Of a stretch of 64,000 nucleotides of DNA, positions 18,653-54,009 are shown one piece after another. The notes beneath the pieces are model-generated. The model was not told the DNA's origin and made no database searches. It saw only the letters and a program-made list of their open reading frames with translations. Each line of letters starts with the position of its first letter. The first letter of the stretch is position 1. The DNA lies in contig JBLDXI010000009.1 of assembly GCA_047495785.1 (NCBI GenBank), positions 1,798,001 through 1,862,000 of the forward strand, given 5' to 3'. The DNA is from Lepidodermella squamata. Its lineage: Eukaryota; Animalia; Gastrotricha. A program made the position numbers and the translations under genes.

Positions 18653-19740
18653 ACTATAGGCGAAGCTCACATAATAACATAATAACATAATAAGAAACCG
18701 CTTATTTAAGGGGGATTTTTTGATTTTTACAGTGAGCACCGAAGGTGCGAAAACCTTGCCCCGCCGTGAAACGCGAGCGCAGCGAGCATCACGGGGCAAG
18801 GTTTCTCTATAACGAACGCCGCTAGCTGGCTCTGTCGCGCATGAACACATGCTGCTGACCATCGGTATAACGAAATCGGCGGTGAATTTTGGTCACCATG
18901 AAGTCTTCCGGTGAAGAAAGAGTCGTCGATAAGAGCGCTGTTAAGGCTTTCTTTGATGTTTGTGCGTGTCCGAAGTTACTACCTATACCACATTGCCGCC
19001 AGATAGCCTACCTCGGCCCACGCGTTTTCCAGAAGATGCAAACTTTTCGTAACCTTCAATATCTGGTAACACATCTTCATACTTCCAGGTTTCCATGAAG
19101 CCACACATGCTGCTATCCTTCACCATTTAGTCATTACTCCCAACTTCTCAGTGCAATAGCCTTGAATGTTGGCACACCGCACTCGCCACCTTTCTTCTTC
19201 TTTGTTTTCTTTCTCCCCCCGTCATAGGCGACGTGGGCGGAAGTGACCATCAAAGACATACTCGTCACTGTCGACAACCTTCTTCGTAGTCGGGTAATAA
19301 CGCAGTCGCGCAATGCCTTGCTCGTTGACCACTCGCAACCTCATGAACGAAAACCTTGCCCCGTGATGCTCGCTGCGCTCGCGTTTCACGGCGGGGCAAG
19401 GTTTTCGTCCGAGCGAAGCGAGGAGACGCTGATTTTATCGAGCGAAGCGAGAAAAAGCACTCGAAACTCTTCGAGCGAAGCGAGATCACTTTTCGTGTTC
19501 AGCATGAAATTCGTTCAAAAATGCCATTTTCATCGTACAGTTTTAAGGTTGATTTTTTAAAGTCGCATTTCACACCAGAAAATCACCTATTATGTCACAT
19601 TATTCCATTTAAATTGCAGTTTTATCGGGAACGGTGAACGCTTCGCTTTGAGTAATATGTCTAATAAGGCCCTAGGTAAGGCTAGTTTCGAGGAAAAAGT
19701 CACATAATAAGGCGAGGCGAAGCCTTATTATGCGACTATT
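18653..19740. mobile_element. Non-autonomous hairpin-rich element (possibly Helitron/Helentron-like) holding an inverted captured segment
   Basis: Terminal hairpin CATAATAAGGC-GAGGCGAA-GCCTTATTATG (~19703-19732), CATAATAA repeats at the left end, three CGAGCGAAGCGAG motifs, and paired palindromes at 18749-18805 and 19348-19407. Confidence 0.45.
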
Positions 19741-20693
19741 ATGAAAGTCGTGAAGCTTGAAGTCAAGGTTGTGAAGAAGGAAGAGAAAGCTGAAGCTGAC
19801 CTCTACGCCGGAGCGGGGGTGTTGAACGGTGTTAAGGAGGGCGAGGCGGACACTCTGATCAACGCTGTGAAAACAGCGGTGCCGCGACTGCAGGGTGTCT
19901 TCTTTCGTGCCCGCGTCGGCTGGGTCTCAAGACAGACAACATAGCAACCGCCCGATACTGGTGGTCCCTGTCAACAGCGCGATCACCAACGAAAATTTGG
20001 AGGACATGACGAAAGAACTGCCGAACGGCGTTAGGATGCGCCGCTTTGTGCCGGCGAACCTTATGGAGGCTGAGAAAGCTTTCGTTCAAGAGGGCAAGCG
20101 AAGAAACCCGAATAGAGTGGAGGGCATCAGCTACTTCCAGGTCCGGAGCATGAGGTTGCGAGTGGTCAACGAACAAGGCATTGCGCGACTGCGTTATTAC
20201 CCGACTACGAAGAAGGTTGTCGACAGTGACGAGTATGTCTTTGATGGTCACTTCCGCCCACGTCGCCTATGACGGGGGGAGAAAGAAAACAAAGAAGAAG
20301 AAAGGTGGCGAGTGCGGTGTGCCAACATTCAAGGCTATTGCACTGAGAAGTTGGGAGTAATGACTAAAATGGTGAAGGATAGCAGCATGTGTGGCTTCAT
20401 GGAAACCTGGAAGTATGAAGATGTGTTACCAGATATTGAAGGTTACGAAAAGTTTGCATCTTCTGGAAAACGCGTGGGCCGAGGTAGGCTATCTGGCGGC
20501 AATGTGGTATAGGTAGTAACTTCGGACACGCACAAACATCAAAGAAAGCCTTAACAGCGCTCTTATCGACGACTCTTTCTTCACCGGAAGACTTCATGGT
20601 GACCAAAATTCACCGCCGATTTCGTTATACCGATGGTCAGCAGCATGTGTTCATGCGCGACAGAGCCAGCTAGCGGCGTTCGTTATAGAGAAA
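18803..20693. repeat. Long inverted repeat: arms 18803-19346 and 20149-20693 (~545 bp, ~3 differences)
   Basis: Direct comparison; the ORF track gives the identical 69-aa ORF on opposite strands (18889+ and 20606-). Confidence 0.95.
19741..20610 (+). mobile_element. Degenerate non-LTR retrotransposon fragment (ORF1 end and start of the ORF2 APE endonuclease)
   Basis: CANIQGYCTEKL...MCGFMETWKYEDVLPDIEGYEKFASSGKRVGRGRLSGG matches APE motifs (N.xGL, L.ETW, GY, R..GG); frameshifted ORF upstream. Confidence 0.7.
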
Positions 20694-29080: not shown

Positions 29081-29519
29081 GATACAGAGGATGAATTTTC
29101 TCATGAAGTTAAAATTGTAAAATTAAGGCGGATAATTTAAATTAGTGATAGTAAGGATTATAAGCCTAATCTGATCCAGTAAATACGATTAATCTCTAAC
29201 TAAAGTTATCTCGGCCTGGCTCGCCTGCACAGCTCATGAAAAATAAGCTCCATGAAGAGTTTCGCCTTGATTGAATCGGTTTGTTTATTCATATTCGGTT
29301 TCAGCTCCGTATCGCAAACATCTCCAAGACAAGGCAGTCCCATTTGTTGCGTCCTTTCATTAATACTCTAAAGTTCTTATCAATTGCCTCCTTTGCAACG
29401 CCATGACTTTGCATGTGCTTGCCAATATCCGTATATCTGTGCCCACGTTCAACTCGTTAGTGTAGGTGTCGAGACGTCATCCCGACATAATCGGCATCGC
29501 ACCGATCACATTTAAAGTA

Positions 29520-29950
29520 CCGTCAACTGTCAAGCGACTTTGACGGTGGGGTCACTTTGCCATGGGAAAATGGGGTGACTTAAGCATAGCAATTCTCGAA
29601 GGTAGCCATGCTGATACCCCTCGAGTGGGGTACCCTAGGATGGCCCTAGAAAAGGCAAGCATTGATGTGTATACTACACGTCAATCGGTCGCCTTACCTG
29701 GTGATTAAAGACAGGTGAAGTTTATGAAATTTTTTGTTTTTTTGGCAAAATTACAATGACTCCGCAGTTAAGCAGGTGAGATCGAAATGATTGCACTCCG
29801 TCACATTTGGGCTGCCTTCTATGCGGGCTATCCAACGGTTACCCCACTCGAGGGGTATCAGCCTGGCTACCTTCGAGAATTGATGCTTAAGTCACCCCAT
29901 TTTCGCATGGCAAAGTGACCCCACCGTCAAAGTCGCTTGACAGTTGACAG
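29520..29950. mobile_element. MITE (Tc1/mariner superfamily) with ~115-bp TIRs and TA TSD, inserted in the Penelope GIY-YIG
   Basis: TA|CCGTCAACTGTCAAGCGACTTTGACGGTGGGGTCAC ... GTGACCCCACCGTCAAAGTCGCTTGACAGTTGACAG|TA; excision restores VVYYFKC. Confidence 0.93.
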
Positions 29951-31191
29951 TAATACACGACTCGCTGCTCGTTGATGATAGACGGCTTCGTCTCTTTGGG
30001 ACGAAAATTCTCGATGACCTTCCTGCTGACAAATATGGGTTCCAAACCCAGTTCAACCTTATTGCTGAGATCTCTCAATTGCCGTTTTACTATCCTAGAA
30101 GCTTTTTCATCGATGTAGGGAATAGGTTTCTGCGCCTTCTGATTTCTTATCCTCGCTGGATTTAGGTTTGCCAATTTCACCATTAATTTACCATCATCGA
30201 GAATTTTCGTCCCAAAGAGCCGACAATATGGGTCTCATGGCAAGCTCCTTCTCGTGGGTCTTGGGCAAACCTCTGAGGTGCACACGTCTGGCACCCTTGC
30301 TGTACACCAGTTCGGCAATCGCCTTACAGCTTCTTTACCGTCTCGTTTAGCTGTTTTTCACGCTCGAGGGTGATAGAATTACAGAAATCTTACAAGAAGA
30401 ACTGAGGTCAAAATTGGATTGCTATCTCAAAACAGAGTTTACTGCGCAGAGCAAACAAGCACGATCGGTTTGGTCACCATTCCGTTAAATGACCTGTCTA
30501 GTCATTATAGGACGGCTACATTGGAAGCACAACGCGATTGAGTCCGGATTCCGAAAAGGAGCTGAAGAACATGTTTCATAGATGTACATTTCCTGCAAAG
30601 ATAGCTCGGCCCCATGTTTGCCGAGTGCTTAACTTTGCACTCCCGAAAAAGGTATCCAGGGAAGATGTCATGGCGGCGTTTGAGCGCGGGTACTGGGAGT
30701 TGTACTGGGAATCGGAGGAAAGCGACTTCTCGAACTGGCTGTGAAGGACCAACTATTCCTCTTCCCTCTATTCTTCCCTCTCTCTGTTCCAATCTGTCTT
30801 CCAATCTTCCAGATTGCCTGACGCGGCGCTCTTCCTTTTCTTCCCTTTTATAGAAGAATTTCTGGTGTTTAGAGTCACTGACGAGCCAATCAGCTCGCGA
30901 CAAATTTCAATTTGAAAATTATTAAGGCGCATTTTTTATTGTGTTGCTGCGCAGAAAGCGATTTTATTGTCGCACACACAAAAATGCGTGCATTATTACC
31001 TATTTTGTGTGTGTGTGTTTGTGTATTTGAAACGCAAAATGCAGTGAATGAATACTCAGAAGCTGAAAACAACAGAATCACATCTCTCTCAGCGCAAAAG
31101 CCGCTCGTGCTGCATTTTATTTGACACGAATGACGAATGACGAATGACGAGAGGCAAACCCGCTTAGATACAGCCGCAGAGACTTTTTCCG

Positions 31192-31795
31192 GGATGTCTG
31201 TACTTGCACAAACGATTTTGCACAAAATGACTTGCACAAATGCACATGCATGTATGTATGTATGTATGTATAATAGCGTTGGATTCGCACTAAGGCGGTC
31301 TTCCATCCAACGGACGCAGATGGGCGCGTCGAGGTAAGGTGGCGAGTTACCTCTTCTTTGTGTAGACGAAATCGTCCACAAAATTGTTTGCACAAACTCA
31401 ATTTTCCAAGCGGAATCGATTTGAATATGAAAATTGAATGTACCGAATTGAAGGCAAAGCCATCTGGCATCAAAGACCGATTTCGGGACCTGCCTTATGA
31501 GATATTTTAACGCGTCTGATTCGAATTTAAATTACAAGGGGTGGCGAGTTTCACGTTCGGACCCTCGCCAACGATGAATTGATTGAATTAAGCTAAAATC
31601 AATCAGTCAATGATGCCATGCCCATTTTTTCTGCTAGTATTACTCAAGATCGCGCTGCCCTTGCATTAGCCAGCTTCGCTACGCATTGAATGATGAAATC
31701 CGCTTAGAAAATTGAGTTTGTGCAACAAGTTCTGTGCAACTGCATTTGTGCAGGTGATTTTGTGCATAATTGTTTGTGCAAGTACAGGTAAATCC
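31192..31795. mobile_element. Foldback-type MITE (GG..CC termini, TTGCACAAA subterminal repeats, 8-bp TSD TTTTTCCG)
   Basis: GGATGTCTGTACTTGCACAAAC... / ...GTTTGTGCAAGTACAGGTAAATCC; TSD at 31184-31191 and 31796-31803. Confidence 0.85.
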
Positions 31796-32064
31796 TTTTT
31801 CCGCAGTGTGCTTATATAAACTTTTTGTTGTTCGGTTTTTAGTGTTTATTATCGCAACAGGTGTCAGTAGTGTGTTTCTATTCTGACGTCAGAGATTCAT
31901 CAATACTTGAGCGCGAGTTCAGCAACGGCAAAACCACACGCGAAACAAAACTCATTCACTTGTAGTCAACCAAAAAATGGAAAAAACCGAACCTTGCGAG
32001 CTTCATCATCATCTCTTGCTTTATTATTTCGAACGCACAAATAATGGTTATAACATAGAAACAG

Positions 32065-32664
32065 GGTTGTGTGCGAAAAGAGCAAGCGAAATAAGAGCAA
32101 TGATATTAGAGCAATGACATGAGAGCAAAACGAAATAAGAGCAACGAGATAAGAGCAAGATGACATAAGAGCAATTATATTATATTGGTTTTACACTGTG
32201 AATGTATGACTTAGGAGCAAGCGAAAAAAGCGCAGCGAAAAAAGAGCAAGCGATATGAGAGCAAACGAAAAGAGAGCAAACGAAATAAGAGCATAACGAG
32301 ATAAGAGCAATGTAATAAAAAGAGCAATTTTTTGGTACATTGATATGGCAAAAAAGGGCGTCAAGCACGCGATGTTGCTCATTATTTTTCATTAGCAGCC
32401 CCAAAGCCAATCAAAAAAGCGGGTTTCGTTGCCAATTCTTCGAAGAAAAAAACTGATTGGGCGCGTGCGAACTTATGATAGTGGGACGAAAGCTTGACAG
32501 AAAAAATGGCCGCATAGAAGAATAACATTTATATAGCAACTAGAAATAACAATATTGCTCTTATATTAAATTGCTCTTATCTCGTTGCTCTTATTTCGTT
32601 TTGCTCTTATGTCATTGCTCTTATATCATTGCTCTTATTTCGCTTGCTCTTTTCGCACACAACC
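32065..32664. mobile_element. Foldback-type MITE (GG..CC termini, 15-bp ..ATAAGAGCAA tandem subterminal repeats, 8-bp TSD AGAAACAG)
   Basis: GGTTGTGTGCGAAAAGAGCAAGCGAAATAAGAGCAA... / ...TTGCTCTTATTTCGCTTGCTCTTTTCGCACACAACC; TSD at 32057-32064 and 32665-32672. Confidence 0.92.
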
Positions 32665-33059
32665 AGAAACAGAAGTGCGATAGAAAAAAACCATGTAGAC
32701 TGAAGGGTAATACCAGCAGCAGTAACAACCGGGTTAATTAACAGCACATCAAAAGAGGGAGACGCAAAAGACACAGAAATTTACTAGACAGTCTTATTCC
32801 ACGCACGCACGCGCAACAAACAACGAATCGACAGAGAACAGAGCTCTATGACAACCACGACTGCGGAAATATGAAAAGAGCAGGAATGAGAGCAGCAGTA
32901 TTATCAGGGTTGTAATATTATAAGCGACATCTCAACAGGTATTTATTCAACCACAACCGCAACACGACAAGCTCGATGATAATAACGACGAAAATTACGA
33001 CTCTGTCGGATATTACTACTAAGTACAAAACAAACGACTGTGTGCACTTTGCTTGTTAT

Positions 33060-35659
33060 TCAAACGCGACGGTAGCGCCAAGGCTCACGAAGCACATTTA
33101 TAAGAACGGGGTAAAGAAGGTCAATGAACATCGCTTCGACCTTCTTCAACTCATCGGGAATCGCCAAAATACCGAAGTGGATCGGCAGAGCTGGATAGCT
33201 GCGACCATCTTGGGCTAACAACTGGCGGGCGATAGGTGATGTCAGGTCTACATTTCTAATGCTCGATAGGTGGTGACGGATACGTTCCAGCACGTCGTCC
33301 GACTCGCCAACGTAGAAAAGTCCGAGCCCGATCGTGTCGCTGAAGAAATAGACGCCACGAGCCTTGAAGTTGCAACGATTTAACGCGAAATTTAGCTGAC
33401 GCTCTTCGGCCAATTCACTGATGCGCGGTGTCGACATGACCGCCAAATCGGTTAAATCGGCTGTATTCGGTGCTGCTGCTGATGAATCGATGACCTTCTC
33501 ATCCGCGTTGATGATCTCCTCCACAACAGAGATCAATTCATCGACATCCAATTTGCTATCGTTGAACGGTCGAATGAAGGCCATAATCCGATCAGCGATG
33601 ATGACGTCAAATTGTTGCTGCTGCTGCTGCTGGGTGGTGATAGCATAGATAAGTTGGTGCGGGCTCATGTAATCGCGGTTAAAGTCGCAGTAGTACTTCG
33701 ATTTCCATCTGTTGTTGCCGCTGCCAGCAGTGGAAAAAGCCTTGCGCATGACACTCAACTGCTTCAGCGCATCTTCACCGATGTTGTTTGAGGCGTATAG
33801 GCGACTTTCATGGCCGCCTTCGTGCTCTCCATTAGATCGCCAGTGTAGTAGAAGAACAGCTGTATAATATAATAATAAATAAATTATCCATACATCATAA
33901 TGTCATATTATCATGTTTCAAATACTTTGATAATAATATTAATATCAACTTGCGATTTTAGCCAACTGGTTAGCATTTGGTTGATTATCGGGCTGCCACA
34001 GCACCACCAAACGACGGATATCCGGTGCACTGGCGAGATGAGCCGAAAACTTGGCAGCGCCCTCGTTTGAATACGGCGTACCTGATGGGAAAAGGTACTC
34101 GCGTGTTACCTTTGTTTTCGCGTTGGTTAGCGCGAAGACATGCCGACATCCAGCTGGTTCGTCGGCCTTGTAAAGCGACCAGCCGGTGTTTTCGAGCAAG
34201 ACCGATTTTTCAGCGATGAAACGCGACACGTGAAGCGGCGAGCGCAACACGAGTGCGACGTACTGCATCGGGCTGCCGGGGCAATGCATGCACACTTTCG
34301 TACAATTATCTTTAGGCTGCAACTGAAGTTTGGCGACAAATTCGGCTCGAGTTACATCAGCTGCCACGTTCCAGCAGTAAACAGTTTTATATTCGGCAAT
34401 TTCGGCTTTCGGATCGACCCGATAGCGACCAGCGCCGTTACGAAGTTTGCTGCCGAACAGTTCGACCTCAACTTTAGAGCTAATACTGCCAGCCACTCGA
34501 ACATTCGAGCCGTACATTGACAGAAATAGTGATGCTCTTTCCGAATTTCGAAAAATAGCGACGCCGAAAGCGTAAAAAGCGCCCGGAATCACGACGACAT
34601 TAATTTTCAAAACATCGCCGCGCACGCCTCGTTCAGCGAACACCAGCTCGAGGTCAGCGGTGGTAGTCGAGAGAGGAAGCTTTTTGAAAATTACGCAATG
34701 CTCGCAAAATTTCTCCAGCGAACAAATTTGCTCGAGCGCACTGCGTTCGTTGCGCCTATAATCATCAACGTAGTAAAGCGGAACGATCGAGCGCAAGGCT
34801 TTGAAAAATTCGACATCAGCTAAATTTTTGTCGATGTCAAGGTGCGTCCAAATTTGAAAGAGCTCGAGTGCAGCGGCCTTGCAAAACGGCGATAGTCGAA
34901 GTACCGGGCCGGGTAGTTCGATAATCTCCTGGCGTTGCAGAAATGTGCTAGCAGCCAAAGCGCTGGTGAATCGAATCACTACGCGATAGTGCATGTATCC
35001 CGTCATCGGTACTAGAGCCGAAACTAGAGTTCTGGCATCACACGAAACAGCGACCATAAACTTCCGGAGTTTTGCCAGTTGAGCAGCAGTTGCCACTCCG
35101 TGCACTAGCACCCAACAGTCTGGGTTGAAAGATTGCTGCTGCTGCTGCTGTCGCTTGATGCTGACATCAATAATGCCCGAATCGATTAGCGCGGTGGTCA
35201 TCGCTTCGTCGTCATCATGATCAACATCACCATGACCTGAAATCGAATAAGGCTTGCTAATTTCGCTTCGATCGACATCTCTGAACAAGGATGTGTCAGA
35301 CGATAATAATTCATTGAGGATCGAAGGGTTGACTGGCTGCGGCTGAGTTCTTCTTCCACACTATTGCTGGAATAACGCGAATCATCCCAAAGAAGATCGA
35401 CAAAATTCGAATATTGCAGCTGCTCATCATCACCATCATTGTGATCATCTCTAGTGCTAGGAAAACGCGAGTCGTCCCATAGAACTTCCATAATAAAATT
35501 CGAATAATGCTGCTGCTGCTGCTCATCAAGACCTGCTTCACCGACGAGGAATAAACTGCCATCTAACTGCTGTTGGCTTAATTGGCTACTGCCAACTGAC
35601 TCAGCGAATAAGCCATCATCGGCTAGAGCGGCGAGCTGTGATTCGGAAAACCCGGACAT
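33060..35659 (-). CDS. Predicted 819-aa multi-RRM / GIY-YIG endonuclease fusion protein (exons 35659-35287, 35236-33950, 33859-33060)
   Basis: Phase-compatible GT-AG introns of 50 bp and 90 bp join three ORFs into 2460 nt with no internal stop. RRM-like starts CWVLVHGV, CVIFKKLPLSTTTADL and TVYCWNVAADVTRAEF; GIY-YIG motif GVYFF...FYVGESDDVLERIRHH...VEAMFIDLLYPVLIN. Confidence 0.7.
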
Positions 35660-36996
35660 TGAAATAATTTATCTCAACTCTAATAACATAAATAAAGTAA
35701 TAAGGTTAAAATCGTGCCATAATAATAGGTATTATAACTAAGACTTCGCGTAAAAAAATTCGCCGAGTTTATTGTCACAGTTCGAAAAAAATTGTAGCAG
35801 GTCGGGTAACGAAACAAGTCCGCTCAAAATTTACGTAAATCCCGAAGCCTAAAACAAGAACGAGGGCAGCGAGCGAGAAACACTACCATCAATTAAAGCT
35901 CGCAAAACCGTCGAAGAGCAGGGTTGACACGGCACCCTTTCGAAGGATGCAAGAGATTGTCATCACAATGTAAAAAGTTGAAAATAATCAGAAACAGATG
36001 AAAGATAATAGCAATGAGCAACACAAAAGTTCACAGAACAGTTTCAACTTAGGCCAAATTCAGAGAGCTAAGGTGCTGGTCGTAGATCTAAAAGACACAA
36101 ATGAAAAGAAAATTCTAATAATATTTATCCACACAAAATAGCAAACCTTGAGAGCATCGGTCGAGCTAATTTTTGGGAAGCCGGTAGGGTTCGACTTGTA
36201 CGCTTCTACCACATCGAAAACGACCTCCGTCATCACTTTTGGGTTGTTGACGAGCTGCGCTAATCGCTGGCAGGTTTTCAGCGAATTCTCGCCTGGCGCC
36301 CATTCTTTTGCCGCAATGTAGAAGGCAGCAAGCACGCAGCTTTCGGTAGGCGCCATTCCGAATCGAGTGAAGACGTGATAGGCATTAGCCGCAAAAGCCT
36401 ATCAAATTCGATGAAAATTCGAAGAAAATTAAATAAATTTAAAAAGAATTTAAAAATGTTGCTAAACGAACTATAACATGAATTTTACGAATTTCTAATT
36501 GAATTATCAAAAGCGCGATAGGTACTTGATATATAAAATGCGAAGTCACATGGAAATGGAAAATCTCACCTTAGACAAGAACAGCTGGCCGAGTTCGTGG
36601 CCACGGATCTTCTCGAAATAGGGATTGCCTGCGACTACTAGGGTGTATTTTTTTATTCCCCGCCTCGCCCGGGGTAGCCCGCCGGATTTCACGGGAAAAC
36701 AATAAAAAAATCCGGGCTGGACGGGCAATGAGCACATTTTTTTATTCGCCCGTGTTTTGGTGCGGATGAGCTAGGATTTTCTGAGAATCGCGGGAAAATA
36801 GCAATAAAAAAATCTGGGAAACGCGGGCGCCCGAATGCATTCAGCAATACAGCCCAACTCTCCCGCGGGAAAGCGGGGAAACGCGGAATAATTATTGAAT
36901 GTTATCGGGTAGATCCGGAAAGTAACATCGCCTGAGCGCGTTTTTAACAATGCGCGTGATTCATGCTAATATCAGAAACTCTACCTATATAGTAAA

Positions 36997-38486
36997 GGGT
37001 CTAAATAAGTGCACCACCTAAAATAAGGTTCCAGCACTAAATTTGAGAGTACGTTTACCTAATTTGCAAACAGCTTACACTAAATTATTTGGGCACCTAA
37101 ATATGAGTTCCAGCACTAAATATCAGCATTCAGTGTCTATTACTGCTGTTAAGACCAGGTGAGGCTCTCAGGCATTCTCGACCACGCGTCTTCAGACCAT
37201 GCATGCTTAGGGTTTTACCTTATTCCCATAGAGAAAAAGTCACCAGAATAAGCACTCAAGCTGAAATTTTCATTTGCCTTATTATATTGAGCGCTTCTCC
37301 ATTGTTCAACAAATTTTGAAAGCATGTAGAACGCGAGCTGCTCTTTCATGTGGTATATATAAGATTTGAGGTGGGCAATTGCTCCTCAGTCTTGATCTCA
37401 TCAAAATAAATGAAATCGTAGTAAAAAAGCGGTTTTTGTATCGTCACAACAGTTGGGTTGCCTACCTCAAATCTTGTACCACGAGAAAGAGCAGCTCGCG
37501 TTCTATATGCATGTTCTATATCCGTTTTGAGAAATTCAACTTTAAATAAAAATGAAGATTCTGAAATTTTAGCTTGAGTGCTTAATGCCAGACATGAAAA
37601 TAAGGCCTATTATGCAAATGAGCCATGACGTTGAGATTAGCATCGCGTTATGATACACTCTTTTGCTCACTGCCGACAACTTTGCTCCGAACGCCGCCAT
37701 TGGCTCTTTTACGCGGGACCATCATGGTGGGACACTGAGTTACAGTATGGACTGTATTTCGGTGGCTTCTTCCGAAAACTTATCAGAGCTTCAATAATAT
37801 ATTTAGAGCTAATTGAGACATTGCAATCTCTATTATCGCAGTCATTGTTTAAAGGTTAGGCGTTGCGCAATAATGGTAACAGACGGCTTTTACCTTATGA
37901 AATGGATAGGATAGAGATGGGACTGTCATGATTTGCCACGTCGCGTTTCTGCAGGAGGCGAGCGGCTAGTAGCAAAGACTAAAATAGTATTTGCCCATGG
38001 CTATGGTAGACTATGGTAGACTAATGCTTCCCTCCTAAAAGAGGCCTTCTCAACGTAACTTAGATTTCAACACCCTGCCTTATTTGCATAGGAGCTTATT
38101 TTTTACGGCCTGGCAAACTTTTGACCTTTGACCTGCCAGTGATGCGTGAACCTGCTTGCGATTAGCGGCGGAATAACATTACAACCAAATTTGTGGTTAC
38201 TTAGTGTGGAATTTTTCATGGTTGATTCATCTTGCTTGGGGATAGGGTACAGGGAATAGGCCCCCGGTCGCTTGGCTGATCCTCGAAGTAACTGCTATCC
38301 AGCGGCCTCGCCAGTGCGACATGATGGCATTCCTATCCATGAATTAGGTGGTGGCTTTGTATATTTAGTGCTAGAGTTGCTTATTTAGTCCTAAATAGGA
38401 TTAGTGGGAGCGACTTTCAAATTTAGTGCTGGAGCTCCAAATTTAGTGCTGGAGTCTTTATTTAGGTAGGTGCAGTTGGCACACCC
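36997..38486. mobile_element. Mutator-like non-autonomous element nested in the hAT, 9-bp TSD TATAGTAAA
   Basis: GGGT.. termini, CCAGCACTAAAT repeats inverted at both ends, perfect TSD at 36988-36996 and 38487-38495. Confidence 0.85.
37251..37582. mobile_element. Palindromic MITE nested in the MULE (a second degenerate TIR element follows at ~37589-38113)
   Basis: AGCACTCAAGCTGAAATTT ... AAATTTTAGCTTGAGTGCT; internal arms TAGAACGCGAGCTGCTCTTTC / GAAAGAGCAGCTCGCGTTCTA. Confidence 0.75.
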
Positions 38487-41400
38487 TATAGTAAATTCAA
38501 AAATAAGACATTGTGATGCACATCGACTTCTGCGAATTTTTCGAGTTTACACGAATTAGCTCTGTCAAATACGAATTCCGTTATTTGAAATCGTTTGTTT
38601 TCGGCATCGATGAGGTTGTCATGGACTGTTTAATCTCCTTCGCGCTCTTCCAGGTCGTTCACCGCGTTATTTGCCCTTTTTCGTAACCCCAGGGAAATTC
38701 GAAAAATCGCTTCAGTAATATGACAATCGGTATAATGCGATCACAGATAGATAGGTTAGGCTGAGATGATTAATCTCGTATTCAATTTATTCAAATTAAA
38801 TTAAGTAATTCTTATGATTTTTTGTCAATTTTTTGCTGTGAAATCGCGTGCCTGATCAATTTGTTGCTTCATCGCCCGGCTTCGCCCGGTCTCAAAAGGC
38901 CGCGGGCGTTACGGGCTGGGCGGGAAGTGCGGGAAACTAGAGAAAATTGCTGAATGCTCTGCGAACGATACGGGCGAGTCGGGCTGTGTGGGCAGAATAA
39001 AAAAATGTACATGGGCAGTGCCCGGCTTTTTTGCGTTCGGGCAGGCCGGGCTGAATAAAAAAATACACCCCTATCGACACGAATGTCGTGCGGCGGTCGG
39101 TTGCTGCATCAGTGGACGACGCTTGCTGCGTGAAAAACAGCGCGCGAGAAGCGGAGGCGGACGACGACGAGGACGACGATTTCATCGATTGTGTCATCGA
39201 TGAAGATGAAGCTGCTGCTGGTGCGGCTGGCTGCCACTGTCGTTTTGTAGCCGAGCTGAAGCCCTGTTGTACTGCAGGAACTTGGCTGCGGCTAAACGTT
39301 TGAAAATTAATATCGGCGGCTTGGTGGGACGATTTTTTCTTGAACAACAGGCTGATGTCGTGCGTCATCGAATTGGCCACGCCGATGAAGGTGTTGCCAC
39401 ACGTTGTCACATCACCAGACGGCGATAACTTACACTGAAACAGGACAATTTTCAGATTTTTGTCAGGTTGCCTGTTCAGTCTCGCGAAGAACTCAACATT
39501 CTTCTCGTTCCAGACTGTCACCTCTGCGAATCACAAAACAATAAATTATGGAATTTTGAAAATATTATACTGTATAACGAGGTCTTCTTTCGCAGTATCA
39601 TTAATAAAATTTTCGATAAAAAGATTTCCCGTAAATAAAATGACTTACTTAACTGCGTGTCTCCGCCGTCTCCATCAGAGAGCGTCAGCGATCCGCAATG
39701 GCAAAGCCTGCTATCATAGCTGGCTGGATTGCTGCGAGTCCCGACCTCGGCGAAATCAGCGAACGTCCCAACAATAGAAATAACTATTTCGCGACCGACT
39801 GGCTTGAGGTCGGCCAGCGAGCGAATGTCGACGTAGCCATTCTCATCGTCGACTAACGGCATAAAATCGTCGATGTTAAATCGAAGATTATCACCATCAT
39901 GACTACTCGTAACCAGCAGCAGGTTGCCGGATTCCTCTCGTGCGATCAGGCGATAGCAGGGCCCTGACGAAACCTGAGGGAAAAAGTTTCGCTTTTTTTC
40001 CGGCATGCCTGCGCTGACGTCGCAGTTTTATGTGATACTTGTCACCGTAATGCAGATTTTCATAAAACTCCTTTGAGTTGAAGAAAAGCTCTCCGAGCTG
40101 AGGTTTCCCTTCCTCGCAGAAAACAAAATTCGTCGCAAATTTATGCTTCATGCCGAAGTTGAGGGTATTCATTGGTCCGAGGAATCTCAGGATTCCAATG
40201 AAAGGCTCCGACTGGCAATTTTTCGACATTCTGATGAGAACCTGACAACTTGAAATAAGCAAAACAATAAGCAACTTTCACGAGCAACAAAAATCTAAAA
40301 AAGTTGAAAAAATGTCAAAACTGGTAGCAGAGCCGTTATACGGAAGATGCGAAATTTGTCCATCATTTTATGTAAAAATTAGCTGATAAATGTATCGAGC
40401 AGCATATACAGCACTCATCTGAAAGTTATTTAGAACAATTGGGTTGGCGAAGCAGAGCATCAAAAGAGCGCCATGATGATGGCGATTACTAAAATAAATC
40501 TAGAGCAAAAGTTTTTGAAACTGGCGAAAAAATGAAAAAATTGGCAGCACGTATGCTAGCGGAACGCGATCGAGACATTTTATTGCGATGATGGCAGCAG
40601 AGTGAATCGCACCAACATTAAATACGGCATCCGCAGAGTTCCAAGAAATTTGATGTGTACTGTGCTGTAAAAAGTATCATCAATATGTTGGCAATATGTC
40701 GAAATTGCGACAAGAATCGACGAGTTTCGTGAAAAGTGCGGGAAACTTTTAATGATACGCATCGTCGCGCTGTAATAAGCAATAAAGCCTCGAGACACGA
40801 CGCAGCGCGTGAAAGAATCGCTACGCAAGTTGCTGTTTTTGCACACATTTTGCTGTATTATTACCGCATCAGCGTCAACGCCGATGCTCATATGCAATTT
40901 GAATTATGATGTTGCGTTCGGAAAACTTTGCTGAAACGAATATACGGCATGATCTGAAAAAATCACCGGTGTCATTGTGATGAAAAAGATGCATAAAGCA
41001 CTGCGACGAACATAATTTTTTTTCAACATCATAAGAAATGGATGATTTAATTATTTTTTGTATGCCCCCCCCTATCTAGAATAATTGCAGGCAGTAACAC
41101 TTTTCTTGATCTGATGTAATCTGCGAAGAAAAAATCGCAGCTAAATAATCATCTCATAGTATTCAGAGAGCATCGACTTCATCAGCAGTTTTTGTGACAC
41201 CCAAACACTTGGCATAACAGTTTGATACCAGGAAATTCAGGTCGCTTTTCGAAGCAGGTGCTGGAATCTACTATGCTGTGTGGGAAAGATTGCCTTTGAG
41301 CATTATTATTTTCTATAGACGATAATAGAACATGAGACTTCCTATAATGGAAAAGGAAAACTGTAACATTCAAATGAGGAAAAGGTTTTTTTCATTGATA

Positions 41401-41829
41401 ATCTGGCGACGGCAAAGGTTGGAACTGCGTGTGCGTTGTGTGTTGGAAAATTATAAGGTGATTTGACGGCTGCTGTTACTACATTCGCGTTGTACTACCA
41501 CGTGCATGGCTGATGATGGTATTTTTGTATACAGCTATATAGCTGCTGTAGAGCATGTCGGAGGCTGACACCCTATAATACGCAAAACATTCAGTCATAT
41601 TGCATCTCATCAGCAGTTGTTCATCTTGTTCATTTTTATTTTTTTCATTTTTAATCAGCCCGGGTTTTTCTGGGATTTTATTATTACATTTTATAACAAT
41701 ATTATAATTGGAAGACCAATTGGAAGAGTTGGAAGAAGAAGAAGGGAAGAGGGAGTGGAAGAATAGAGGGAAGAGAGAGGGGGAAGAAAGAGAAGGAAGA
41801 GGAAGATTGCATGAGGTCATGCTTTTTGG

Positions 41830-43150
41830 ATATTATAACTCAGTGCCCTCGATTTCGCTCAAGCTCGGAAAGCACACAATAAAACAAACACCCTCAATTA
41901 AGTACTTGGGTGTCACGCTGACCCCTCAACTCAGCTGGGAGCCTCACATATCCAGCATCTCCGCGAAGTGCCGTCCGAGAGCTGGTGTCCTACGAGGCAT
42001 CATGACACGTAAGATTTTGCCACAGCCACTAGGACTCATGTTTCATAAATCGATGGCCGAAAGCCTGGCCACGTACGGCTCGCCAGCATGGTCCTGTCAA
42101 CCCAAGTCTTCTATCAACAGACTATTTGAAATACAGGCGAACGGGCTTCGCGCTGCCCTCGATCTGCCTTACGACGCCGATTCCTTTGGCACTTTATTTC
42201 TGGCTGATGTGCCCTCAATTGAAGACATCTTCACCGAACGTCTGGAACGCTACGGCCAACGCTGCCTGGCAGCTGGCGATGTCATGGCCGACTACATTAA
42301 ATACATAGCTTCACTATCTTTCGATAGCTTCGGCCATAAGACCATGAACGATCATTCTCCCGCATGGCGCATACGGCACTTGGTCGATTTAATCCCAGTT
42401 ATGCCTCGGCGCAAAAATTTAAACTGGTTGATATTTGAAGTTCGGCCATCATTGCCAGAAACTTCTACTCTACAGCTGTGCACCTCATCCTTGCCTTTAG
42501 ATCCCTAGCCCTCGAGCCTACCGAGAATATCCTGCCCTCGTCTAATTCAGCGTCAGCCAATGCCTGTCCGTGCCCAGAACCCTGAGGCCTCAAATTCAAG
42601 TAACGTTTGCTTATTATGGCTAATTATTGTGCTTTATACACGACAGACATTTTGGCGAGCCTTGACTGAGCCTTTAAGCCTTTGAGCCCAGAGCCTTGAC
42701 TGAGCCTCCACCCTGAGCCCGCGAGCCTGAGCCTGGTTGGAGCCCTGACCGAGCCAACTGGTAAACAATTGTGCTTTGCCTTTTACAGAGCCTTGACTGA
42801 GCCTTCGCCCTGAGCCTACGTCATACGTGCCTTGAGCCTTCATCTGAGCCCTTCATCTGAGAAACTCACCCATCACCTGCAGTCTCGGAAAAATCTTATT
42901 GAGTAAACTTGAGCCTCCCCTCGTGCTTAATTTATTTTGTGTTGAGGACCAATCCCGAAACCCGAACTCGACTCGGAACAACGGAGCAATCCTAATACGA
43001 ACAGAACAAAGCGTCAAGCCAAGCGAACCACCCAAACAAACCAGCTGCAAACCAGTCACTCAGAATCAAAACGAGTCAATATAACAAAAAATAATAATAA
43101 TAAAATATATAATGATAAAAAAATTAATCATAATGATGTATGATAATTTG
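41830..43150 (+). mobile_element. 5'-truncated LINE (RT thumb/C-terminal region, GAGCC-repeat 3'UTR, A/T-rich tail)
   Basis: IKQTPSIKYLGVTLTPQLSWEPHI...LATYGSPAW...IQANGLRAAL, characteristic of non-LTR RT C-termini. Confidence 0.88.
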
Positions 43151-43464: not shown

Positions 43465-43720
43465 GAGGTGCGTTTTTTATTAAAACCGTGGTGCTATTGT
43501 TCAGCGCTGTGATCAATGTTTCGGTGAGATTCGCAACAGAGGCGGCCAAATGTTCTTAATCCGCGCGGGGATTTGTCTTTTCTGACCGGCCTTGATCGCA
43601 ATTCGAGCCGTTCAGTTCATGATAGACGTGCCGGTTGTGATTTCTCTGTTGCGAATCTCACCGAAAAATTGATCACAACGCTGAACAATAGCACCACGGT
43701 TTTAATAAAAAACGCACCTC
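43465..43720. mobile_element. 256-bp MITE with ~75-bp TIRs
   Basis: GAGGTGCGTTTTTTATTAAAACCGTGGTGCTATTGTTCAGCG ... CGCTGAACAATAGCACCACGGTTTTAATAAAAAACGCACCTC; TSD not resolved. Confidence 0.85.
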
Positions 43721-44029
43721 TGTAATCGATAATCGAAGCGCTGGCGCCAGCGATTTGTGCGATCGATCGATTTGTAATTAGTTCAGTTTTGTACTCCAGG
43801 ACAATAAGTTAATCCCCTGCCATATGGCCCCCATAGCGTTGTATGGTTTTGGTGGGGAGTGAGCACTCTATCATCTCTATGGTACTATCACAATTCCTCT
43901 CTGTCAGATTCTTATTTAGCTGTAATAAGGGCCCTTTCTGTACGGCACGTCTCATTTATGTGTAAAAGTGTATAATTAACGGCTCTGTTGTTCGAGTGGT
44001 TTTGGAAGATCTTACTACTACCGAATTCA

Positions 44030-44253
44030 AGGCTGGAGCAATAAGGCAGCCAAGGCAGCGACTAGCGATTGCTAGTGAAAAAATGGCTGAGCAAGCTGAG
44101 ACAATTGGTAAGGTTCTAGGTGAGGATATTGTGTACCAAACTACGCCTATCGAAGTTTTCCGTAATTTGCCGTTTCCTGGTGCGGCTGATATGGCGAACA
44201 TGTTCCAGTTTTGCCAGGATTTAGCCGCGATTTCGAAGCTACGAAAAAGCTGA
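44030..44253 (+). pseudogene. Isolated fragment of an NmrA-like (NMRAL1) gene
   Basis: EQAETIGKVLG...FRNLPFPGAADMANMFQF resembles the NMRAL1 C-terminal LGFPGA.DLANMF.F motif; no Rossmann N-terminus nearby. Confidence 0.6.
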
Positions 44254-48418: not shown

Positions 48419-50048
48419 TTAAAAGGTGCGCCGTGTGATTACAACGTCAAATTTCGGGGGTATATTGGTGATGCTGTGCTTGCCCGCATCCAAGTCGACT
48501 TCGTAGCCTTCATTCGGGAAAGCAAAGTTGAATCGTTGCAGCATGGCAACTATGAAAATGAAGTATTCGATGCGAGCCAGCTGCTCGCCCAGGCAGATTC
48601 GAGGCCCAACTCCGAAAGGCATGAAGTGCGTTGAATGAGTCAGCAGAGTTCCGTCTTCGGCAATCCATCTTTCTGGCCGGAAAACCTCAGGATCTCCCCA
48701 ATACGCTTCATCATTGTGAACGGTCCAAACGTTGTACTGAATGGTGGTGTTTGGCGGGATTCGATACCCTGCGATAAATTATTATTTATGATTTCATATT
48801 GACGAAAATCGTTTTTCAAACCTTCAAATTCGATCGATGAGTGTTTTACGGCATGAAACAGCGAGCTCGGAACGATTGAAACTTGTCGCAGAATCTCACA
48901 CATCATGGCATCGATGTAGACCAGCTTCTTACGGTCTTCCAACGACGGCATGCTGTCGGTTTTTATGACCGAATCAATCGCTTCTTGACACTTTTTCTGA
49001 TACTCGGGCCATTTGCATAGGTAGAGAATCGTCCAATTCAAGGATGTTGCCGTTGTTTCAGTGCCAGCTAGCAGCATGTCTCGCATAACGGAAACAAAGG
49101 AATCTAGATCAAAGCCTGCACCTTTCTTGTCGTCACCAGCCAGATACATGTCAATGAAGTCGCTCAGGTTATCTGGTTGGAAAACAGGTCGACGCTCCTC
49201 AACAGCATCAGTAATTAAATGCTTGACGTATTTATCGATATCCATAACGTCGATCACCTGCGGCGGCAGTTTAAATTTAGCGAGTATGGGTAAAGCGAAG
49301 AATATTGCGTTGTCCTGGAAAGGGCGCTCGAAAAATACAGATGTTAGACGGAGAAGTTCGGCGAATTTCGGGTCGCTGTAATCCAGTCTTTGGCCCATAG
49401 CGACCGAATAAATCACGTCGGAAACACTGCTTTGTAGTAGTTTATCGAAATGGCTCTCGACCGTGCCGACGCGGCGATCGATTTCTCGAACTATAGCCGC
49501 AGCTTCGTCTTGAATCTTCGCCACCATTATGTTAGTTCCAAGGCCAAGGTCACGAAGCCCTTTGTGTCCGAATCGACGATTCTTTACCCAGGTTTCACCA
49601 TCAGCAGCTACAATGCCTGGAATCAGCGTGCAGTAGCCGGGCATAAAGGAATCTGGCCGATAGCTAAACTGCTTGGCGGTGGAGATTAGAGCCTTCCGGA
49701 TAAGCTCGGGTGAGCTGAGGTTAACGATTCGCATTTGACCGAAGTAAAACGTGAATATAGGGCCATGTTCTTTCGTCAGTCTCTTGAATATTCGCCATGG
49801 CTTGTCTCTAATTGTATCAGCGAAAATATCGACAGTTCCTTCAACAAATTATTATCAAAATATCGAGTTTGCAGATTTTATAAATTAGTTTTACCGATAA
49901 ATGGCTTCGGTCTGGGGCCAGGTGGCAATCGCCTAAACCAGTCTAAAATGTACACACGCGAACCGTACAGAACGAAAGCAGCCGGCGTTACCAAGTACCA
50001 ATATGACTTGATAAATTCGGCTGCGGCCTGGATTATCAGGTAAATCAT
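48419..50048 (-). CDS. Cytochrome P450, CYP2 clan, intact, 3 exons
   Basis: PPGP, WVKNRRF, AGTETT, EILR, PERW and heme motif FGVGPRICLGE. Confidence 0.95.
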
Positions 50049-51587: not shown

Positions 51588-54009
51588 TTAGTTATTACGT
51601 CGAGTGATCACAACGTCAAATTTGGGCGGAATGTTCGTCAGGTTATGACGGCCACCGTCCACATCCACCTCGTAATCCTCGGTCGGAAAGGAAAAATTGT
51701 AACGCTGAAGCATGGCAACAACAAAAATGAAGTATTCCAGGCGAGCAAGTTGTTCACCCAGACATATTCTAGGTCCAACTCCAAATGCCATGAAATGCGT
51801 CGTATGGTTCAATAAAGACCCAGCATCATCGATCCATCGTTCTGGTCGAAAAACTTCAGGATCTTTCCAGTACTTCTCATCATGATGAACTGCCCAAATG
51901 TTGTATTGGATGCAGGTGTTTGGAGGAATGCGATAACCTAGTTTCAAAAAGTACAAATCCTATTCATAAAGATAGGATTTCAAGTTATCAACCTTCAAAT
52001 TCGACTGTGGCATGCTTGGTTGCGTGGAATAATCCATTAGGCCCAATTGTTACATATCGCAAAATTTCACACATAAAGGCATCGATGTAGACCAGCTTCT
52101 TCCGATCGTTTAAAGTTGGCATGCTATCGGTTTTTATCACTTGATCTATGGCCTCTTGGCATTTCCGTTGGTATTCCGGCCATTTGCAGAAGTAGAGAAT
52201 AGACCAACCCAAGGTTGTAGCCGTTGTTTCCGAGCCGGCGAGTAGCATGTCTCGCATGATAGCGGCGAAAGTTTCCATGGAGACGGCCGTCTTATCGTCC
52301 ATACTTAAATAAAGATCGAGAAAATCGCTGACGTTATCAGGTTGAAATACAGGTCGGCGTTCTTCGACAGCCTCTTTGACCAACTGAAGAATGTAATTCT
52401 CAATATTCTTCATATCGACGATCTGCGGTGGAAGTTTGAACCTTGCAGTGAGCGGCACTGCAAAGAAAATAGCGTTTTCTTTGAACGGCCGTTCGAAAAA
52501 AGTCGTTGCTAATCGCTGCAGCTCAGTGAACTTGGGATCATCGTAGTTTAATCGCTGGCCCAGACAAAGTGAATAAATTACGTCAGAAACACTGCTTTGA
52601 AGGATTTTGTCAAATCGATGCTCGACTTTACCGATGAAGCGGCTATCAATTTCTGCGCAAAGGGCAGCCGCTTCGTCCTGAACCTTACTCACCATTTGAA
52701 TAGTTCCCATTCCCAAGTCTCGCAAGCCTTTGTGGCCGAATCGGCGATATTTAATCCAAAGTTCGCCATCTGCAGCGACTATTCCAAACGTCTGAGCACT
52801 GAACCCAGGCATAAATGAGTCGGAACCAGGGCCGGATTAACCCTCTGGCGGCCCCTGGGCTTATGACGGTTGGCGGCCCCATTTTTTGTAAATTTCAAAA
52901 AATTGGGGCCATCAATTACTACAATAAAAAGCTAGCAAAAAAACTATTTTGCACCTATGCAAAAGCTACCAATCAAGGCACAAAAATCCATCTCCGGGCG
53001 AGCGAAGCGAGCTTTAGCTAACGATATTTTTTGAAAATTGGACTCAGGGACTAGCTTAGAAATGAAAATTTGTACCCAATTTCTCTGATCTGAGTAGGTT
53101 TTCAAGTTTTCAGGAGTCTCGATCTCAACGAATTATCCCGCATACGGGCGTGGGGCGTCGTAAACCCTCACTACCTGGTTTTAGTGCATTTTTTCCCACT
53201 GCGCCCCCTACCTTGACCGGCTACTTTTGATGATTTTGCAACCTTGTTGATTTTTGAATTGATTTTCGATCCCTGAGAAAGCAGCAAAATCCATTATCAG
53301 AGCGGAAATTTAGACTAGCACCCGTAACGCGAGCGAAGCGAGCTATATCTGGCGCTATTTCTGAGGAGTTTTCAGCATGAATAGCCTAAAAATGCTCCAA
53401 ATTTGGTTGAGAGCTGACATTTACCTGCGGGGCGAGAGCTGTTGGTATCACTTCTTTGGTATAAAAAGACGAAAAATCATTTTCATTGGAAATGTAACAA
53501 GGGAAAATGCGAAGAAAATCTATTAAAATTGACTTTTCTGTCGACGCTGGCGGCCTTTTTTGACTGGCGGCCCCTGGGCTCCAGCCCTCCAAGCCCATGC
53601 GTTAATCCGGCCCTGGTCGGAACGGTAGCCGAATTCCTTCGCTTGTGATATCAGAGCTTTCCTAATGACATCGGAGGAGTTCAGGACAACAGTGCGAATT
53701 TGGCCAAAATAGAGCGTGTAAATTGAACCGTATTCATCGCCCAATTTTTTGAATAGCCACCAAGGTTTTTGCCTTATGTCATCACTTAGTAGATAAAACG
53801 TGCCTGATAATCATAGGAAATATGAGCAGATCTTAGAAACTGGCTTAATTATTACCAATGAAGGGAAGAGGCCGCGGCCCCGGCGGAAGTCGCCGAAACC
53901 AGTCAATTATGTAGAGTTGAGTTCCATAGAGGAAGAAAGCACAGGGTGGTATCAAATACCACCATGATTTCAGCACGGAAGCTGCTGTTTGCACAAGTGG
54001 TTCAAACAT
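51588..54009 (-). pseudogene. Tandem CYP2-clan paralogue with a hAT MITE in exon 2 (probably inactivated)
   Basis: Same exon structure and motifs (AGSETT, FGVGPRICLGE); GYRSD|SFMPG is interrupted by 789 bp plus an 8-bp TSD. Confidence 0.85.
52827..53615. mobile_element. hAT-family MITE, perfect 15-bp TIR and 8-bp TSD
   Basis: GTCGGAAC|CAGGGCCGGATTAAC ... GTTAATCCGGCCCTG|GTCGGAAC. Confidence 0.95.

Follow-up and report, generated by a model that had tools for sequence, protein, structure and literature searches.

The region at positions 33060-35659 of the stretch that we analysed (64,000 nucleotides of DNA from the gastrotrich Lepidodermella squamata, hereafter the window) is a probable pseudogene, because the splice model that had made it look like one gene appears to cover two frameshifts. 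[quoted passage not shown] The scores of frames and splice sites suggest that this copy is probably doubly frameshifted, with the proposed junctions happening to compensate, and that it would make no nuclease. The fusion of RRM-like units to a GIY-YIG domain probably belongs to intact relatives of ~833 aa, which would be assembled through a single phase-0 intron and would consist of an acidic tail, three degenerate RRM-like units, a linker and the GIY-YIG domain. We regard it as an even chance that the locus is a decayed copy of a multicopy two-gene cassette, whose intact pair would be an accessory of a mobile or duplicating segment. The features are listed in Table 1.

Table 1. Features of the RRM-like/GIY-YIG gene and its upstream partner, in window coordinates.
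Feature	Coordinates	Strand	Basis
N-terminal acidic region, ~105 codons	35345..35659	-	Strong frame preference; ATG at 35659
Frameshift zone 1, probable change from first-ORF to second-ORF frame	35330..35362	-	Switch in frame preference; a zone, not a single base
"Intron 1" of the initial annotation, probably coding	35237..35286	-	Intron, donor and frame scores
RRM-like/ferredoxin-like unit 1	34893..35114	-	AF2 single-sequence, VIA, Foldseek
RRM-like unit 2	34461..34697	-	AF2 single-sequence, Foldseek, RRM-like pattern by eye
RRM-like unit 3, weakest fold prediction, RNP2 motif kept best	34167..34388	-	AF2 single-sequence
Intron of 94 nt, phase 0, GC-AG the most likely type	33860..33953	-	Intron and donor scores; paralogue joint
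Frameshift of 2 nt (probable); window reads TATA	33796..33799	-	Near-identical X1 contig has 2 nt fewer
Linker/middle region, polyQ tract and acidic helix	33411..33795	-	Coding periodicity
Divergent GIY-YIG nuclease domain (likely), Y-Y-G-R-H-E-N	33060..33362	-	Profile, phage and plasmid matches; stop at 33062-33060
OB-fold-like partner gene, co-oriented upstream	36050..40229	-	RPA70-like by eye only
TA-flanked TIR insertion, ~2.4 kb, nested repeats	36639..39072	.	In a coding exon of the partner gene

Genes lie densely in this window of animal DNA. Judging by their translations, they include what we take to be a P4-ATPase, delta-COP, RPL15, GrpE, cytochrome P450s, COQ5 and a BAZ-like gene; for GrpE, Pfam agrees. 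The RRM-like/GIY-YIG gene sits in a transposon-rich gap at ~29-43 kb, with GrpE on one side and an NmrA-like gene fragment (43966-44250, + strand; Pfam E 1.7e-6) on the other. The statement that everything around the gene is decayed holds for this gap only and fails for the rest of the window, which is full of ordinary host genes. MITE-like inverted-repeat elements were found at 31198-31787, 32065-32664 and 43465-43720, and a remnant at 41708-42508 (+ strand) resembles, by eye, the C-terminal part of ORF2 from a non-LTR retrotransposon; Pfam was blank for this remnant. Farther off, a perfect inverted repeat at 18748-20693, with arms of ~550 nt that are 100% complementary, is either a very young element or an MDA or assembly inversion artefact. 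It adjoins the detached 3' fragment of a third cytochrome P450 gene (17795-18140), which lies 30 kb from the two tandem P450 genes at 48429-49734 and 51598-52812. Related contigs came from run X1, which behaves as DNA and is possibly the source sample of this genome. They match parts of the region at ~99.5%, 96%, 89% and 86% identity, and those closest to identity may represent the other haplotype. Some X1 contigs lack 32057-32664, the region of one of the MITE-like elements.

Upstream of the nuclease gene lies a second gene with an OB-fold-like appearance, whose stop is ~390 nt before the ATG of the nuclease gene. Searches of Pfam, PDB and PHROG with pieces of this partner gene were blank. 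It has three ordinary introns (39648-39524, 36569-36399 and 36146-36088), and its putative 45-nt first intron scores as coding (+0.174/nt); a frameshift in an A-run near 40000 is probable. The TIR element inserted in its coding exon has 20-nt inverted ends with 2 mismatches and high-copy nested repeats, and shows a high repeat depth in X1, a depth that does not equal copy number. Both cassette genes at this locus look dead. One X1 contig skips 32045-36550, a span that covers all of the nuclease gene and the end of the partner; it joins 32044 to 36551 with 30 other letters between them and has a short side of only 30 nt, and it is possibly a copy or an allele without the nuclease gene.

The search for relatives outside this genome was negative throughout its scope. 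The middle exon had no homologue among 1.84 billion protein representatives, the GIY-YIG domain, queried alone and as a region, had none in the protein searches, and none was found in metagenome and viral contigs. The gene family is probably a small, multicopy animal family confined to this lineage. Around the cassette we found no transposase, target-site duplication, hairpin, direct repeat or element ends, and for this reason its mobility is only a proposal; no reverse transcriptase, ribozyme, terminal repeat or Helitron end in the window could be assigned to it.

A less probable reading, which nevertheless deserves real weight, is that the two genes are a host pair for genome defence or repair that evolves by birth and death, in which case the intact members would have been domesticated as nucleases that are structure-specific or RNA-tethered, with this copy a dead duplicate. 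The presence of introns and a window lacking transposase and element ends agree with such a pair, and domesticated GIY-YIG proteins are known in ANKLE1, SLX1 and MSH1 (PMC1564403). However, the lack of a homologue anywhere searched would be odd for a core repair gene, the copies are dispersed, and both genes here are decayed and lie in a transposon-rich intergenic zone.

The arithmetic of the 819-aa join was reproduced by script translation. Joining 35659-35287, 35236-33950 and 33859-33060 gave 819 codons with a single terminal stop, and the GT..AG ends, the phase 1 at both joins and the coordinates were all as the initial annotation gave them. All three ORF pieces show codon periodicity, each in its own frame. 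Near the two junctions, 24 and 18 other GT-AG pairs also keep the frame, so that the stop-free join is weak evidence when taken alone. We therefore used simple coding, intron, donor and acceptor models trained on the host genes of this window with leave-one-out, the training set being small (12 introns and 15 kb of exon). Host introns nearby measure 43-59 nt and have 21-36% GC.

By these models, the 50-nt "intron 1" is probably not a real intron. Its GC content is 42%, above that of the host introns, and its coding-versus-intron score is +0.066/nt, compared with -0.04 to -0.23 for 12 of the 12 real introns and with a 5th percentile of 0.027 in host exons. The donor, CTT/GTTCAG, scores -10.3, whereas real donors range from -0.3 to 4.7. 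The frame of the second ORF is open from 35360 and is favoured over that of the first ORF from ~35345, upstream of the claimed donor. Its margin over 35330-35237 is 4.7 log units, which a wrong frame attains in at most 1.7% of host windows; the first ORF's frame reaches a stop at 35200. In the overlap of the two ORFs we found no alternative GT-AG or GC-AG intron resembling host introns. A frameshift at 35362-35330 is probably the simplest way to read the frame switch. Among the X1 contigs listed, none spans this zone.

The second intron stands in part. There is a real AT-rich intron with its acceptor at 33860, with 17% GC and a score of -0.165/nt, within the range of real introns, and a paralogous X1 contig aligns on both of its flanks and not inside it (joint at 33863-33940). 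The donor at 33949 did not hold up: CAA/GTTGAT scores -4.0, whereas the best donor, the phase-0 GC site at 33953 (ATC/GCAAGT), scores 3.8. With the phase-0 intron, the last exon begins in a different frame, which runs into a stop at 33766, ahead of the nuclease domain. Upstream of 33799 the scores do not favour the nuclease frame (-1 to -2); from 33799 on they favour it strongly (+9 to +14). This step falls exactly where the near-identical X1 contig has 2 nt fewer (33796), and deleting those 2 nt would connect the phase-0 frame with the nuclease frame. The 62 nt upstream of 33796 favour the alternative frame by 1.4 log units, as a wrong frame does in 4-7% of host windows. Near 33796 the X1 contig carries two substitutions, one of them synonymous in the phase-0 frame and both replacements in the 819-aa frame.

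The weak donors, the coding character of "intron 1" and the 2-nt difference from the X1 contig indicate that the description of this copy as intact is probably wrong. It is accordingly unlikely that both introns are spliced as drawn to give an 819-aa RRM-GIY-YIG protein. The sound arithmetic speaks for this model, as do the undecayed GIY-YIG residues and an "intron 1" of typical host length that ends in TTTCAG, but both donors lie beyond the range of real ones, the first intron scores as coding with the frame switching ahead of its donor, and the frame step in the last exon coincides with the length difference in a near-identical contig.

It also seems quite improbable that there is no fusion, the RRM-like and GIY-YIG ORFs being separate cistrons of an operon, with 33860 a trans-splice acceptor and a start at 33749. 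The second ORF does have its own stop (33947-33945), and by the standard of local introns the spacer is both long and very rich in AT. However, a consensus donor, GCAAGT, stands just before that stop, the spacer contains neither AATAAA nor ATTAAA, and the 110 nt from the acceptor to the first ATG score as coding.

The published Lepidodermella squamata assembly (122 Mb, 157 contigs, 43% GC) was made with MDA and HiFi (PMC11660948). Since this probable source comes from MDA-amplified DNA with ~3% heterozygosity (PMC11660948), and since the X1 majority path, from what may be the assembly's own run, is without the 2 nt, the frameshifts could be amplification or assembly errors or be limited to one haplotype with an intact allele at the locus, a reading that we consider very improbable given the reported consensus QV of 58 (PMC11660948) and a partner gene broken independently by a real insertion.

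Under the preferred reading of a decayed cassette copy, the domains at this locus represent what the intact relatives would encode. The GIY-YIG domain is likely real, judged by profile and pairwise matches. GIY-YIG was the best or a near-best match in five libraries, with every score below the curated threshold. The Pfam GIY-YIG family matched at E 0.007, with 17.1 bits against a threshold of 22.6, and TIGR01453 reached 14 bits against 56; the NCBIfam matches include a group I intron endonuclease model. The best PDB match was T4 endonuclease II (E 0.019), the best phage match an annotated GIY-YIG protein (RSF1; 33% identity over 84%, E 0.02) and the best plasmid match a GIY-YIG protein, and the top named Atlas clusters were GIY-YIG (0.84). 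An HMM built from five RSF1 relatives gave the domain 15.3 bits, compared with at most 7.1 for 2000 shuffles and at most 5.2 for 353 other window segments, a comparison that is partly circular in that the seed is the query's own best match.

The catalytic residues ascribed to the domain are present, at Y33350, Y33314, G33308, R33284, H33272, E33137 and N33098. The GVY, YVG, R, H and E align with the RSF1 and Burkholderia GIY-YIGs; the Asn is placed from spacing only and comes one residue later than in T4 endonuclease II. In Hpy188I structures the equivalent residues serve as general base, proton shuttle, phosphate contact and metal anchor (PMC3045582). The predicted order of elements fits a hairpin, an Arg helix, a linker strand and a Glu helix, but the pLDDT of this model is 39, and fold searches with it returned noise only. 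All searches and folds were run exon by exon, with each exon as a separate query. For the linker that precedes the domain, profile searches gave no credible family match. At the other end of the gene, an AT-rich leader precedes the ATG, and the acidic-aromatic motif YSNF..LWDDSR is duplicated (35370-35530, - strand). The two WDDSR copies differ by three synonymous changes and 0 replacements, and a duplication with synonymous differences suggests a selected protein-docking motif.

The three RRM-like units are borne out at the level of predicted topology, a beta-alpha-beta-beta-alpha-beta order being predicted three times, although the third is weak, the RNA-binding motifs are degenerate and Pfam RRM gave no match at E<=10. 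The AF2 single-sequence model has a mean pLDDT of 38, with ~50-60 in two units and <45 in the third. The top Foldseek matches are mostly tandem-RRM proteins (U6 snRNP core, HuR, HuD and PABP; E 2e-4 to 1e-3), and ssDNA complexes are also among the matches to this region. Atlas features favour RRM (0.82-0.86), which is a lead only, and the Atlas shape search was mixed between RRM and other ferredoxin-like folds. In VIA the highest ranks go to ACT and ribosomal S6/S10-type folds, with Z 9.4-9.6 for unit 1 to ACT/ferredoxin folds. Units 1 and 3 are alike (shuffle p=0.004). It is fair to speak of an RRM-like fold.

The further proposal that the protein is RNA-binding, RNA-tethered or RNA-directed was not supported. 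By eye, the aromatic at RNP1 position 5 is absent from all three units and that of RNP2 is kept in unit 3 only, and the structure searches could not tell an RRM from an ACT fold. RRM-like folds also bind ssDNA or protein. Rfam found no RNA family or ribozyme near the gene over 29-44 kb. A dead HUH-Rep was considered by eye for unit 1 and was not supported: one His has a motif-II-like spacing by eye, there is no motif-III Tyr/Lys, and searches of Pfam, PDB, PHROG and phage proteins gave no match.

RRMs are joined to a nuclease domain in MARF1, REXO5 and PARN as well; there, canonical RRMs accompany RNases or exonucleases of the NYN or DEDD type, whereas the nuclease here is a putative GIY-YIG DNase. 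With the branch of UvrC, homing endonucleases and T4 endonuclease II, the domain would share, by its predicted elements, a short hairpin between the Tyr motifs, an Arg-x3-His helix, a linker strand, a Glu helix and a terminal Asn (PMC1564403). In contrast to that branch, the gene here is nuclear, intron-containing and from an animal, and its nuclease is C-terminal behind RRM-like units; T4 endonuclease II and the phage and plasmid GIY-YIGs are at most 33% identical to this domain. SLX1, plant MSH1 and ANKLE1 (LEM-3) are likewise eukaryotic multidomain GIY-YIG proteins, and in two of them, ANKLE1 and MSH1, the nuclease is at the C-terminus; there is, however, no RING, MutS, ankyrin or LEM domain here and no sequence match to any of them. 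The SLX1 family is without the C-terminal Asn (PMC1564403), and an SLX1-type Helitron nuclease was rejected on the presence of the terminal Asn and the lack of a match.

Among mobile elements, the Penelope-like endonuclease resembles the domain in being a C-terminal GIY-YIG with R, H, E and N, and intron retention is known in Penelope-like elements, whose CCHH motif has cysteines between GIY and YIG (PMC8557442). A Penelope origin was rejected: there is no CxxC between the motifs and no reverse transcriptase, pseudo-LTR or hammerhead ribozyme, the Hydra and Chlamys PLE clades also being without those cysteines, so that their absence alone does not exclude all PLEs. A true CxxC-type Penelope remnant 3 kb from the nuclease gene differs in appearance from the GIY-YIG domain here. 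This decayed remnant (29280-30234, - strand; by eye, Pfam blank) carries its CxxC between the motifs and is broken up by inverted-repeat insertions.

RPA is found in Helitron-like elements, one family of which also has a GIY-YIG (PMC11417382; see also PMC6431247). The likeness lies in an OB-fold-like gene that is co-oriented with the nuclease gene, spliced and copied as DNA; the difference is that the nuclease here sits on an RRM-like protein, not on RepHel. A Rep/helicase (RepHel) ORF is absent from the window, and no hairpin-CTRR end was found downstream of the cassette, the upstream side having been scanned crudely. That the cassette is a decayed non-autonomous Helitron derivative is still conceivable.

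The initial statement that no tandem-RRM GIY-YIG protein is known agrees with our searches, in that no described protein of this architecture was found in the databases and literature covered. No GIY-YIG-RRM fusion was found by title or abstract, and RRM is never mentioned in the 2006 survey of the GIY-YIG superfamily (PMC1564403).

If the decayed-cassette reading is correct, a cassette limited to this animal lineage, with an OB-fold-like ssDNA-binding gene followed by the nuclease gene, would have been duplicated as DNA, introns included. The GIY-YIG domain of intact members would nick DNA by a one-metal mechanism with Tyr as the general base (PMC3045582). The RRM-like units would replace the targeting modules of other GIY-YIGs and would hold single-stranded nucleic acid, either ssDNA or R-loop RNA, with no sequence guiding, while the OB-fold-like partner would coat the displaced ssDNA. 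The pair would most likely act as an accessory or passenger of an element that moves, or duplicates by segments, at the DNA level, much as Helitron-like elements bring along RPA and a nuclease as cargo. A bolder version, which we rate a long shot, is a two-component system in which a GIY-YIG recruited by RNA (a nascent transcript or R-loop) nicks DNA and the RPA-like partner captures the displaced strand, so that the cassette spreads, or attacks transposons, without a transposase or reverse transcriptase.

GIY-YIG nucleases take their targets from attached modules such as DNA-binding repeats, RING, LEM, MutS and RT. If the fusion is true, tandem RRM-like units would be an attachment not seen before on this nuclease, within the databases and literature searched, and would hint at a DNase steered by single-stranded nucleic acid. 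For study, the present copy is probably the wrong choice: a clone of the 819-aa model would yield a protein that is out of frame in part. Beyond the nuclease itself, the cassette may be the sign of a mobile element not yet classified, in a phylum that has hardly been studied.
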